Part shown: in pieces, positions 2,905 to 52,149 of the stretch | Layout of the letters: each line of letters starts with the position of its first letter | How positions within the stretch are numbered: the first letter of the stretch is position 1 | From: Podarcis tiliguerta | Lineage: Eukaryota | Length of the DNA stretch: 64,000 nt | Assembly: GCA_965153285.1 (NCBI GenBank) | Contig: OZ229112.1 | Reading direction: 5' to 3' (one strand) | The notes under the pieces: generated by a model | The model's input: the letters and a program-made list of their open reading frames with translations, nothing else | Database searches by the model: none | What the model was told of the DNA's origin: nothing | Translations under genes and position numbers: made by a program

Positions 2905-3660
2905 TAAATCAGTACTCTACATGGGGCTGCCCTTGAAACTGACCAAGAAACTCCAGCAGGTGCAGAATGCCGCGGTGAGACTCTTTACATGGTCCTCACC
3001 ACAGGATCACATTCACCCAGTGCTATACCAGCTGCACTGGCTCCTGGTGGAGTACAGAATCAGGTTTAAGGTGCTGGTTTTTAACGTTTAAAGCCCTATA
3101 TGGCCTAGGACCCTCATACCTACGGGACTGCCTCCTCTGGTATGCCCCACGGAGGACCTTACAGTCTGCAAACAACAACACTCTGAAGATCCCGGGTCCC
3201 AGGGAAATTAGACTGGCCTCAACCAGAGCCAGGGCCTTTTCGGCCATGGTCCCAGCCTGGTGGAACGCTCTCTCACAAGAGACTAGGGCCATGCGGGATT
3301 TGACATCTTTCTGCAGGGCCTGCAAGACAGAGCTGTTCTGCCAGGCCTTTGGCCAGAGTGCAGTCTGACCTATTTTCCTTTGTATAAGAACAAGCATGAA
3401 GGAGGCCCCCCAGGCTGTTCACAGGTCCTTATATGATCAGTGAAAGCAGTTGGTCCTGGCAAGTATTAACCGCTCTTAATCTTAACCTGATAACTGCCAT
3501 TTGTCCAGATTTTAATTTGTCTGAATTAATTTTAAGATGTATTTTAATTAAGTGGTGCCTGTTTTTATGTATACTGTGTTATTTATACGATGTTAGCCAC
3601 TCTGAGCCCGGCTCTGGCTGGGGAGGGCAGGGTTCAACTAAAAATTATCATTATTATGTT
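2905..3660 (+). mobile_element. L2-clade LINE 3' fragment (RT C-terminus plus 3' UTR); boundaries approximate
   Basis: KKLQQVQNAAVRL...HIHPVLYQLHWLLVEYRIRFKVLV and RAFSAMVPAWWNAL, typical of L2 ORF2 ends; ATT-rich tail. Confidence 0.75.
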
Positions 3661-3910: not shown

Positions 3911-4023
3911 CGTGGAAGATTATATAGTGGTGCCATTCTGAAGCAAGCCACCACCGCTCTTTTTCTCTGTTTAGATAGAAGTTTGTGCCATACTGCTTTT
4001 TTTGATCTCTGAGGATGCTCAAC
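3911..4023 (-). CDS. RYR2: RYR2 exon ~76 (113 nt; calmodulin-binding segment)
   Basis: [37 protein letters not shown]; AG/GT (GTGCGT). Confidence 0.95.
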
Positions 4024-4197
4024 CTGTAGCACACATAGAAACAGAAAACAGAAATTAAACACCTCTTCTAGACTGTTGCTTCATTAAAAAAAATAAAAAT
4101 AAAACCTCATAACAGTTGCAGGCGAAAAATACTATGCTGAAGTATGGTGTTAGCTTCTTATTGGTTCATCTAAAATGCCCTAAGCCTAGAACACAGT

Positions 4198-4228
4198 GTC
4201 CCGTCCCGTCCCGTCCCGTCCCCGTCCC
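4198..4228. repeat. (CCCGT)n pentanucleotide microsatellite
   Basis: gtcccgtcccgtcccgtcccgtccccgtc. Confidence 0.85.
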
Positions 4229-5328
4229 CCCGCCAAATTATCCCCAGTTAGGATATCTTGCTCTACTGGTTTTTAAAATGTTAAGAAATATTATATGCAA
4301 TACTATGCATATAATTTGCTTAGTATGTGCAATAACCAAATGCATATATATGCAATATATGCAATAACCAAATGTTATATAAATGGCAAAATGAAAACTT
4401 TTTAAAAAGGTTTTGGTCATCCCCATTCGAATCTTTACCAGAATATTATGGCCACAATCTAGAAAATTATGCCCCCAGCAAGTCTTTGAAAACATGTTTC
4501 TTGAACAACTGCTCCCCTGTTGCCCCACAGGAAACTGCTTTAAAAAAATAGATTTCAGAAGTCATCTGTGATACAGCACGCAAGTCTGCTGTCCAAAGGA
4601 AAACAAAGCAGATGTTCCACAGGAAACATGGAAGATTTTGGATATGCTTAAAGTTATCTGGAATATAGCTTACTACTTCTAGTAGTGGTGGTAGGTGAAG
4701 GGACTAGCAGGGGAAAAGCTTTTCTTTTTAACTTCCCCACTTCTAATTTGAAAAATAAATAGTTCAGAAAACATTTAAACTACCCGTGGCATACTTGTTT
4801 ATTTTGTAAGAAAGATCAAGACCATTAAAAAGAATTTAATGTTAATTGGAGTTAAATAGAATTAGCTAAAACATAAAATATAAATGTTACGTACATTGGT
4901 CACCACAGATTTACTTGGGAAACAATATTGGTCTTTATAGTTAATCAAAAGATAGTACTTCAAATCACATGCTGGTGAGGTCACTTTTAAATTAAAGAAC
5001 AGATCTCTGATAAAAGAGACAAATTTACCTAATTACCATGGGGGGGGGGACACATAAGGATCATACTGTGAATACGGAAACTTAATTAGTCAGGCAAAGA
5101 AATCAAAGCACCCTTTGGAGGTAATTGTGTATTACAACTGTGTATTACAAAACAACCCTCAGTGCAGAATAAACAAATGTGGAACAAGCATGTTATGAGA
5201 ATGGGCATTTAAAAATGTGATTTAAAATATAAGTTAAAAGACAAAAATATATTCATAGGTTAAAAAAAAAAACTATTAATAGGTAAAGCTAACATAATTA
5301 GCAATATGAAAAGACACTCCATACTTCC

Positions 5329-5364
5329 CCTTTTGAAAAATTTTCTGCCCCGACTAGGGAATTT
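5329..5364 (-). CDS. RYR2: RYR2 cassette exon ~75 (36 nt) with non-canonical GG donor
   Basis: Good acceptor (tttttattattacttccAG), then KFPSRGRKFFKR: same length, phase 0/0 and K....GR pattern as recalled human KSKRVGRRHYCL. Followed by GGAAGTAT instead of GTAAGT. Confidence 0.78.
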
Positions 5365-6119
5365 CTGGAAGTAATAATAAAAAGGAAAGTAATAGATGAA
5401 GCAAAAAATGAAAGACCAAAACAATGTACTTTATATAGATAAAAGAAAGCTTTGGAGAAAAGTGGAAAACCTCAAGACTTGATGGCTTTTGATTTAGGGC
5501 CAAACAACACACAAACATGTCACCTGGAACTGTGTGAATATTTTTAAAAGTGTACACAGTGTACACAGCAGTAAAAGTGTACACAGCAGTCATTTTGGGA
5601 ACCAATCAGGATCGCAGTAACATTTCCTCCTGCACTGTGTAGTCTCATGAACAGCTCCAAAGCTGCTAATTGGCATGGGAGGGAAGCTCTATTATTGTGT
5701 CAGTGGCATGTTTCAGAACATAACTGCGAAAAACCAGCCTAACTGGGAGCATTAAATCAAGTTGACTTTATTCTGGTGGTATGTGCCGTTAAATTGTTAA
5801 TCGCCTACTCATGGGCAGCATGGAAGTTTTAAATGAAAGCTATAGAAAATCATTGAGTTATGCCAGCAAATACTATGGATCTCTGTATTGAAAATACTTA
5901 TGTATGCACTTCCTAGTTGTTTTTCTGTAAATTACACATTCTGAACAAAATAGATTCATGTGTCCATAATATTTTCTCACTGTACTATTTCTTACTGTAC
6001 TATTGTGGTAGGAATCCCAGATTCCCAAATTGTCACAATGCTACAAAAAGTATATTTGAAAGCCGTAGTTGAGAGCCTTTTAAAAATAGACTTTAAGAAT
6101 ATTAAAATATATATCTAAC

Positions 6120-6254
6120 CTGTTCCAGATGAAAAAGTACACTAGCTATATCCAGGACCCTTTCCACCGTCTTCTCCGGATCTGAAGTAACTTCAGTCCT
6201 GTTTGGTAGATCTTTGTAAAGAGCAACCTGCCACCTAATGGCGGGATCTTCAAG
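6120..6254 (-). CDS. RYR2: RYR2 exon ~74 (135 nt)
   Basis: LEDPAIRWQVALYKDLPNRTEVTSDPEKTVERVLDIASVLFHLEQ; AG/GT. Confidence 0.95.
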
Positions 6255-7079
6255 CTGCAGGAAGAAGGGATTTTATGAAGAATGTAAGCATTAAAAATAA
6301 GTATCAACTTGCTAGGACCAATATAAACCATTCTTCTAACCAGAACTAGCCTACATGGGTTGCCAAGACTCCCTTGTCAAGTCTTATCCAATTTTTTCTC
6401 CAGAATTACTAACCCTGGGCAAATCATCAAGTAGCAAGATACAGCCTACAGCAGAGGACAATTTATATAACTTACACCTCCGAGACTAATACATGGACCA
6501 AAATATAGCTATCCCTTCGGATTTCACACTTTTCCAAATTTTGTGATAGAGTTATTGGCTCAAAAAAGTACCGAAAGGCTTAAAAGCACATTTTAGAATA
6601 ATATATTTTTAGAAATCTCAGTTAAAATACATATTTAAATATTTTTACGATAAAATACATATTGGAAGTACAGATAGACCCACACACACACTGCAGATTA
6701 ATGTGGAAACGGGGTGGACAAGTGCAAAACTGACATGAACTGGACCAATCCATCCATCCCTACCTCCAGATGTTGTTGAATGACAACTCCCATCATTCCT
6801 AACCACTGTTCATGTTGGTCGAGGCTAATGAGACTTTGAATTCAACAACATCTGGAGAACCACAGGTTCCCCACCCTTCTCAAAGGGAATAACATTGCCT
6901 CCTCACTGGAGGACAACCAAAAAGCTGTTTTAACTTTCTAGTCCTTTACCTTGAAAGTTCCAGCTGCTACCATGGTAGCATGATAGATAATGAGTTTGAA
7001 TACAGCAGGGCTTAGTTCTGAATAAACATTCATAGGACCACGCACAATGATGCAAGAAGTGGCAAAAAAAAAAAAAATA

Positions 7080-7415: not shown

Positions 7416-8581
7416 AAAGTGGCAAGTGAACAACAAATAACAGATAAGAGCCAGATGCTGGCATGAATGAGGCCACAACTTAATTGTCACAGAAAGAAGA
7501 GATTTGGTTTAGGCATGGATTGAATGATCAAGCAGGCTGTAGGTTACTCTCTTGTACATAAGCTTGCAAACATAAAATACACTATTTCGCACAACCATGC
7601 CTCTAATCTACTCCTCATCGCTGTCATACAGATACCAAGCAGTCAATATCTCCATTATCTCAAAGACAGAACTTTTCAGTAGCTTAACAGTTCCATATGC
7701 TGCAGGATAATTAGCCTTCCAGATATACAATATGATTTATTGTACTTTTATTGTATATTCCTTTCATATTTATATATTGTTCACTGCTCTGAGGAGCTTT
7801 GGAGCAAAAAGTGGTGGGTGTCTGCGCATGTATATTAGGATTATTCATTAATTTATATTCTGCTTAATACCAAGATGGCTTTTAAGACATACCTAAGAAT
7901 CATATAAAAATATGTCTATTGTATATTACAGTGGTTCAGAAATGGTTCTGCACGGCAGTAGCATGGTGTGGAGGCATTAAAATAAAAAAGCTCTCCATCC
8001 GTCATGTAGATTGCAGAGTTCCTGTGCAAGGGCCAGTTGCTTCCAAAAATATGCAGTAGTGTCATAGAAACTTTCCAGTTGAGGGTGCAATACACATGAT
8101 AAGCAACTCTTACATATTACAGCTACTTCAAAGAGCTGCTGCCACACAAAAGTGCTTCCAGCAGATGAGTGAAACTTTGCAAAGGTTAATTGCCACTAAG
8201 CCAGTAGCATGCTACTCCAAACAAACCACAATGTGAAGCCAAAGTCTGTTTGAGTGCAAACATCACAATCCCTGGTTCACAAGTAACACCAAGTCAAGGA
8301 CAGTGATTTGTTGCTCCTTCTAACATTAGGGAAGGAGCAAAGCAGAAGTAATCTGTGAGTACACTCTATAAGTAGAAAACTAAACTGGATATTCCTAAAC
8401 TATGCGCTTTAACCTAAAAGGCCATTAAAACAGCTACACAAAAGAGTGTTAGTTACTATGAAACAGGGCAAAGCATGAGATATTTGACTCTTTAAAACAA
8501 ACAAACTCAACTACATAGATGGTATCCTGAACACCATACAGAATACGCAAGGGTGACCAAGATGCAATACTTTAAAATTAC

Positions 8582-51615: not shown

Positions 51616-52016
51616 GTATGTAAAATGTAAAGAAGTAGCATGGCTTACAAATAAATATCACAACTAAGCAAAATTACTACCCAAAGGACACAGGTTCCAT
51701 GTTATAGGTAAGGTTCTTAATTTTTAAAATGAACCTATGTACTTTTTGTTCAGTCAATGTCATTACAATTTTTAATATAATTTAGTAACAGTATCATAAA
51801 AAACACTTTGCTTCACACGTCCAGTATAGAAAAATCTGTTCTGGGCAGGCTGTTCTGTACAACTACTGTGGTAGTGAATGCAAAGCGACTCACTAACATG
51901 CTGGGGCTTTGAACAAAGGTGCAATCCACAACCTGTGGACTCCAAAGACTTCTTAGAGAACAATAGAATATATGGGTTGTGAATTGAAGGGACAGAAGAC
52001 TCTTTAGAATACTTAC

Positions 52017-52149
52017 CAAGCCCCACACTGCTGTTTTCCAAAAGATAGCTAAGATGATCAAACATAGCCTTTTGATTCTGCCTGCTGATGCGGCAAAAAT
52101 AACATAGAAAACGACAGCAATTTGCCACCATCTTAGGAAAGGTGATTTC
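52017..52149 (-). CDS. RYR2: RYR2 exon ~43 (133 nt)
   Basis: [44 protein letters not shown]; AG/GT. Confidence 0.95.

Follow-up and report, generated by a model that had tools for sequence, protein, structure and literature searches.

The window, a 64-kb stretch of lizard DNA, carries RYR2 on its minus strand, and the short exon 75 that is the subject of this analysis sits there between exons 74 and 76. The features of this locus are given in Table 1, together with the exons of a bird-like homologous locus, L001, that is described below. A slash marks an exon-intron boundary within a sequence, or the two ends that are brought together at a splice joint.

Table 1. Features of the RYR2 exon 74-76 region in the window and exons of the bird-like locus L001.
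Feature	Position	Strand	Remark
RYR2 exon 74, 45 aa (LEDPAIRWQVALYKDLPNRTEVTSDPEKTVERVLDIASVLFHLEQ; LEDPAIRWQ...FHLEQ)	6254..6120	-	91-93% identity to solved RyR2
Exon 74 donor CAG/GTTAGA, canonical GT	6119-6118	-	
Intron 74, 755 nt, between exons 74 and 75		-	
Polypyrimidine tract and AG acceptor of exon 75 (ctttcctttttattattacttccAG)	5365..5395	-	
Exon 75 acceptor ttattattacttccAG (ttccAG)	AG at 5366-5365	-	
Exon 75, 36-nt cassette, phase 0/0, no stop, peptide KFPSRGRKFFKR	5364..5329	-	
Non-canonical 5' splice site of exon 75, GGAAGTAT (+1..+8)	5321..5328, GG at 5328-5327	-	
Canonical GT 4 nt past the end of exon 75 (GAA/GTATGG)	5323..5324	-	use would give a 40-nt frameshifting exon
Intron 75, 1305 nt, GG...AG	4024..5328	-	joint 4022/5328 in X1 contig
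GCTAATTA, 27-34 nt past the exon 75 donor	5295..5302	-	putative QKI-type element
ACTAAT (QKI core motif), 239 nt into intron 75	5085..5090	-	single site
RYR2 exon 76, calmodulin-binding helix (starts VEHPQRSKK)	4023..3911	-	100% identity to solved RyR2
L001 exon 74	5698-5832 of L001		
L001 exon 75	8148-8183 of L001		
L001 exon 76	from 9727 of L001		

Reading of the minus strand agrees with the preliminary description of this DNA, which had proposed a strong acceptor followed by exactly 36 nt at phase 0/0 and then by a GG donor; all of its coordinates were right, including those of the GT at 5324-5323 and of the ACTAAT at 5090-5085. Exon 75, its position, its length and the GG that follows it are read directly from the window. 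Its codons are AAA TTC CCT AGT CGG GGC AGA AAA TTT TTC AAA AGG, encoding KFPSRGRKFFKR, and a longer read of the 5' start of intron 75 gives GGAAGTATGGAG. Across all 64 kb of the window's minus strand the pattern AG-N36-G[AG]AAGT occurs once, at the exon 75 site, and the match of the exon to this pattern is more than chance.

The identity of the gene follows from the flanking exons, which are 91-100% identical to solved RyR2, their identity to RyR1 and RyR3 being much lower. Exon 74 corresponds to residues 3520-3564 of pig, 3519-3563 of human and 3518-3562 of mouse RyR2, and exon 76 to the segment that starts at residue 3577 in pig and 3576 in human and spans 3575-3611 in mouse. The calmodulin-complex peptides of RyR2 in 6y4o and 6xxf match exon 76 as well. 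In every solved RyR2 there are 12 residues exactly between exons 74 and 76. Solved RyR1 and RyR3 are like RyR2 in the conserved flanking exons, including the calmodulin-binding helix, but their exon 74 and 76 equivalents are contiguous (3608/3609 and 3456/3457, respectively) and contain no insert. The 12-residue gap in RyR2 and its absence from the two paralogues demonstrate that the insert is RyR2-specific. The proposal that the window contains an RYR2 exon 75 with a GG donor was therefore well founded: the flanks match solved RyR2, and the 36 nt form 12 codons in an open frame. Short inserts at the same exon junction are present in the RyR1 models P0135, P0150, P0168, P0159 and P0169 (from sea snake, turtles and pig). 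These isoform inserts all start with V (for example VWTHKEIWQ, VRGCR, VSYYRVARSLGLG), as read-through of a GT donor would give, and they probably reflect faulty annotation and not an RyR1 equivalent of exon 75.

For a survey of the 5' splice sites, the Naja naja RyR2 model P0214, whose 85-100% identity exon by exon marks the window as squamate DNA, was mapped onto the window, which placed 45 exons. Once three alignment ends that fell in introns had been resolved, the other mapped donors in the window were GT in 44 of 44 cases. Exon 75 does have the sole non-GT donor, as had been claimed, although the count is of 45 mapped exons and not of the 47 given originally. The snake model, annotated as 'hypothetical protein', contains a segment that falls at window 51956-52123, where it is in the wrong frame and runs into an intron with stops; the real exon near 52016 ends TTG/GTAAGT (first intron base 52016), and P0214 is mis-annotated there.

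Despite the mismatch at +2, the exon 75 donor AGG/GGAAGTAT matches 8 of the 11 positions of the CAG/GTAAGTAT consensus, and a match of at least 8/11 is reached by just 11 of the 43 scored GT donors of the window. The AAGTAT at +3..+8 is found otherwise in 1/43 of these scored donors. On the published U6 measure, which covers +4..+8, the donors of lizard and L001 both score 5/5 and the human donor 4/5. The features by which Parada 2014 recognized U2-type non-canonical sites, that is, consensus outside the dinucleotide, an AG acceptor and a pyrimidine tract, are all present. A U12-type intron was considered and rejected, since the donor reads GGAAGTAT as against /RTATCCTT and a TCCTTAAC-type branch site is absent from the last 80 nt of intron 75.

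Sequencing runs provided evidence on both the GG and its use. From DNA run X10 (organism C), contig 16 (1954 nt) covers 4762-6400 and differs from the window at 17 positions, none of them at 5321-5330. The GG is hence present in independent DNA, a direct observation, and is not an assembly error. A comparison of this kind had been suggested beforehand as a check for an assembly error or a private mutation, and the GG proved to be kept in the DNA of a close relative. At window position 5354, X10 has A in place of C, which changes the minus-strand codon AGT to ATT and thereby Ser to Ile at residue 4 of exon 75; that very closely related animals differ by a replacement is in keeping with a weakly constrained exon 75 peptide. 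Position 3985 of the window is polymorphic in organism C (G/A, 7.7 of 15.3 depth), and the contig of organism A, the source of run X1, has A only. Since organisms A and C share this polymorphism they must be very close, either as members of a species complex or as populations.

Run X1 is transcriptome-sized and shows no depth over most of intron 75; its data are contigs and not raw reads. A 58-nt X1 contig with a depth of 125.6 has 5357..5329 joined to exon 76, the joint 5328/5329-4022/4023 being recorded as 'skips 1305, both = 2'. This joint has three equivalent placements, and because only 5329/4023 gives an AG acceptor, intron 75 is GG..AG. The 5329 to 4023 junction that had been predicted from the DNA is therefore observed as an mRNA-type joint in a contig from a close relative of the window species; that the X1 RNA comes from a close relative follows from exon 76 of organism A, where three third-codon positions are unlike those of the window. 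The junction evidence concerns the downstream side of the exon only (5329/4023), X1 contigs over exon 74 being absent, perhaps through filtering. The X1 contig for exon 76 (depth 142.7) ends precisely at 4024, the point on which paths with inclusion, with skipping and without splicing would converge. The junction contig begins at 5357; if the intron starts with GG, this is the first 31-mer by which spliced and unspliced RNA can be told apart. This latter start, although it is not a direct reading of the donor, hints that organism A has GG as well. From the contig ends we infer that exon 75 would be included at a level of about 88% in X1 (125.6/142.7). The 40-nt form (5325/4023), which would use the GT 4 nt downstream, was present in no contig, it being understood that contigs drop rare forms. 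Raw RNA run X18 gave 0 reads at the locus, and X5 was found on intron pieces only. Together these results indicate that intron 75 is very probably a GG-AG intron spliced at the GG. Within intron 75, at window 4248-4467, X1 has overlapping contig variants with depths of 19-62 and 1-6 differences each, the rest of the intron being without depth; these have the appearance of an interspersed repeat that is expressed and not of a retained intron.

A word search with exon 74 returned genomic ORF fragments only (P0001-P0029, from squamate, bird, fish and mammal), and the search of representative sequences likewise gave fragments, with no full-length RyR2 among them, each search having been run with single exons. 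The ORF fragments P0012-P0014, which have the human-type exon-74 peptide, were left out of the alignment and of the locus scans. In 8 of the 9 clear amniote partial RyR2 models FHLEQ/VEHPQ is continuous without an insert, in line with the expectation that gene predictors miss this exon. The insert-less models come from the birds Grus, Lamprotornis, Colinus and Merops, the tortoise Gopherus, the cobra Naja and the mammals Pteropus and Ovis; the one model with a 12-residue insert is that of the bat Hipposideros (P0202, RSTCMRWKYYSM). A Chelonia mydas model (P0205) has GKPLVGRIGLFT and then 63 aa of junk after FHLEQ, and may contain exon 75. The insert is also absent from transcript-derived fish fragments (P0108, P0173 and P0033) and from one tetrapod fragment (P0190). 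There appears to be a systematic annotation gap, such that nearly all automatic sauropsid RyR2 models and many mammalian ones are without exon 75.

The peptide encoded by the exon had been described as strongly diverged, and this is what the comparison of lizard KFPSRGRKFFKR with bat RSTCMRWKYYSM gives: the two are nearly wholly different and of the same length. Basic residues recur in the 12-residue inserts, and an aromatic pair is found at positions 9-10. The comparison shows a fast turnover of the exon 75 peptide. The peptide itself is barely constrained, so that what matters may be its length, its charge or no more than the spacing.

A metagenome scan with the exon-74 alignment produced one locus, the 15.8-kb L001 (JGI Ga0065711_1041912), whose exons match bird RyR2 models best; scans of genome contigs and of viral contigs with the same alignment gave no match. 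Exon 75 of L001 reads tttccAG / AGATCTGCTTGTGTAGGCCGAGGCTATTTCTTCTGG / GAAAGTATAGAG and consists of 36 nt in an open frame, encoding RSACVGRGYFFW. Its donor, TGG/GAAAGTAT (within 8148-8195), is GA and thus neither GG nor GT. The local alignment of lizard and L001 scored 27, against 13.1 +/- 1.6 for 300 shuffles, 0/300 of which reached 27, and the exon 75 site is the sole part of the 3.9-kb exon 74-76 interval of L001 that aligns with the lizard. The two match at 26 of 40 positions just upstream of the exon. Identity is 19/36 in the exon itself and 15/18 in the donor region, G[G/A]AAGTAT[G/A]GAG[T/A]GT, which indicates that the splice signal has been preserved more closely than the coding sequence. 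AAGTAT at +3..+8 is common to the lizard GG donor and the L001 GA donor. Weak GT sites in frame follow 18-24 nt further on in L001, which also has a GT at the same place as the lizard GT that lies 4 nt downstream of the exon.

These data modify the view that both the length of the exon and its GG donor have been kept amniote-wide. The length has been, with 36 nt in the lizard, its close relative, L001 and the bat, but the dinucleotide of L001, the one archosaur-like locus obtained, is GA, and the common feature is therefore a non-T (purine) at +2 and not G. As judged from mammalian GG (in the literature), squamate GG and bird-like GA, a donor with non-T at +2 probably dates back to the amniote ancestor. 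The GA donor of L001 is a candidate natural GA-AG intron.

The motif ACTAAY was found 45 times in the window, against 80 expected from shuffles; it is below expectation and not enriched, and QKI motif enrichment was accordingly rejected as evidence. The QKI-type ACTAAT to which attention had been drawn is indeed present at 5085-5090 (+239), but as a single match it is at chance level. No ACTAAY lies within ~200 nt of the lizard donor, where there is just GCTAATTA at about +27. L001 has ACTAATTACCTAAC at +40, which resembles a bipartite QKI element, and another ACTAAT at +300. As far as sequence alone can tell, the layout of motifs in lizard and L001 is compatible with control by QKI.

In mammals, this exon has a history of its own. 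The Takasawa/Okamoto work, as reviewed in PMC8553518 and PMC9033130, describes an intron 75 that starts with gg in rat, mouse and human and an exon 75 of 12 residues. According to the same reviews the exon is included in heart, aorta and kidney and skipped in islets, cerebrum, cerebellum, pituitary and adrenal, and changing gg to gt in human insulin-producing cells impaired insulin secretion and synthesis. A mouse study cited in a further review reports that exon-75-containing RyR2 impairs insulin secretion, and a meeting abstract refers to mice in which the splice type of exon 75 is altered. Human exon 75 has +2G and 4/5 U6-type matches at +4..+8, and its inclusion is QKI-dependent, with a delta PSI > 0.9 in cardiomyocytes; minigenes with +2T or +2C became QKI-independent, and QKI exerts its effect through U6, which it engages from the intron adjacent to the 5' splice site (bioRxiv 10.1101/2025.09.04.674271). 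Ryr2 splicing is altered in the QKI-knockout mouse heart. The mammalian facts that the preliminary description had given (12 aa, a GG donor, inclusion in heart, skipping in islet and brain) are thus in print. By the same token the novelty it implied was overrated, because a GG>GT minigene, an edit of gg to gt, the altered mice and the QKI link have already been published in mammals.

Taking all results together, we consider it likely that the lizard site is the squamate orthologue of RYR2 exon 75, a frame-preserving GG-AG cassette in which the +2 defect is offset by pairing and inclusion depends on an activator. The exon would put 12 basic/aromatic residues directly before the calmodulin-binding helix of the cardiac ryanodine receptor, and the major spliceosome would remove intron 75 as an intron of the GG-AG type. 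The handicap at +2 may be offset by perfect complementarity at +3..+8 (AAGUAU), as both the donor sequence and the human work suggest. By analogy with mammals, inclusion would probably take place only where an activator such as QKI binds the downstream intron, as in heart and muscle, and the exon would probably be skipped elsewhere, in neuro-endocrine tissues.

A different explanation of the same observations is that exon 75 is spliced at the GG but is constitutive, or noisily skipped, in reptiles, the perfect pairing at +3..+8 being enough without any switch and without QKI. The 5/5 U6 measure of lizard and L001, as against 4/5 in human, agrees with this, and so do the depth of the X1 junction contig, ~88% of that of exon 76 (125.6/142.7), and the lack of an ACTAAY near the lizard donor. 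However, the exon-76 contig ends at a branch, which indicates a second upstream path in X1, and in human +2G alone leads to QKI-dependent inclusion even with good U6 pairing. Insert-less tetrapod and fish transcripts (P0190, P0108) exist as well, and we therefore regard constitutive splicing in reptiles as unlikely.

Another possibility, for which we see very little room, is that the productive donor is the GT 4 nt downstream, which would turn the site into a 40-nt frameshifting poison exon whose transcripts decay. GAA/GTATGG is indeed present, L001 has a GT at the same place, and a rare form would be dropped from the contigs. Yet the only junction contig found uses 5329 and not 5325, the 36-nt form is protein in all solved (mammalian) RyR2, and the downstream GT simply equals +5/+6 of the GGAAGT consensus. 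It is hardly credible, finally, that the GG stems from an assembly error or from a private mutation of a GT site, or that the 36-nt frame is a chance pseudo-exon, readings in favour of which nothing was found: GG is present in the independent DNA run X10, which carries a different organism label, and gg in rat, mouse and human, while the pattern is unique in 64 kb, is homologous to L001 and has been seen as a spliced junction.

A GG-AG cassette in a squamate is of interest since exon 75 adjoins the calmodulin site and in mammals separates the cardiac from the islet/brain channel, and since the mammalian GG donor is the published model of QKI rescuing a defective 5' splice site. Squamate GG together with bird-like GA suggests that the +2 defect is old and maintained and that +3..+8 is the conserved part of the signal. 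Tentatively, and with rather more reserve than for the orthology and splicing of the exon, we propose that +2 may have been held 'not T' since before the mammal/sauropsid split (>300 million years), drifting between G and A with AAGUAT fixed, and that selection would keep a donor that pairs with U6 and is rescued by an activator as a cardiac/neuro-endocrine switch of RyR2. If +2 is truly maintained as 'not T', this would be natural evidence of selection keeping a catalytically handicapped donor as a switch.

Conserved GA-AG introns are known from FGFR genes and ITPR1, as cited in Parada et al. 2014 (PMC4176328). As in L001, their donors are U2-type, carry a purine at +2 and follow the consensus at the other positions, and these introns are linked with alternative splicing. 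The FGFR GA site requires a canonical GT that lies 6 nt upstream of it, whereas exon 75 is without an upstream GT, and the GA site of L001 is a predicted donor. The QKI-dependent human exon 75 resembles the lizard exon in its +2G, its good pairing at +4..+8 (AGUAU) and its A/T-rich downstream intron with ACUAAY-like elements, which in the lizard are putative. Lizard and L001 differ from it in having 5/5 instead of 4/5 U6-type matches; the nearest ACTAAT of the lizard is at +239, whereas L001 has ACTAATTACCTAAC at +40. The mammalian gg/ag exon 75 in general is like that of the lizard in gene, in its place between FHLEQ and VEHPQRSKK, in size (36 nt/12 aa), in phase (0/0) and in GG at +1/+2, and mammalian intron 75 likewise stands alone in having a non-GT donor within the part of the gene that was examined. 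Differences are found in the length of intron 75, which is 1.3 kb in the lizard and 0.8-1.0 kb in mammals, and in the peptide, KFPSRGRKFFKR against RSTCMRWKYYSM in the bat. The mammalian GG oddity and its regulation were already known, and the reptile copy mainly shows its age; the new points are that a squamate has exon 75 with a GG donor, that the bird-like locus has GA next to a conserved AAGTAT, and that the exon is poorly annotated.
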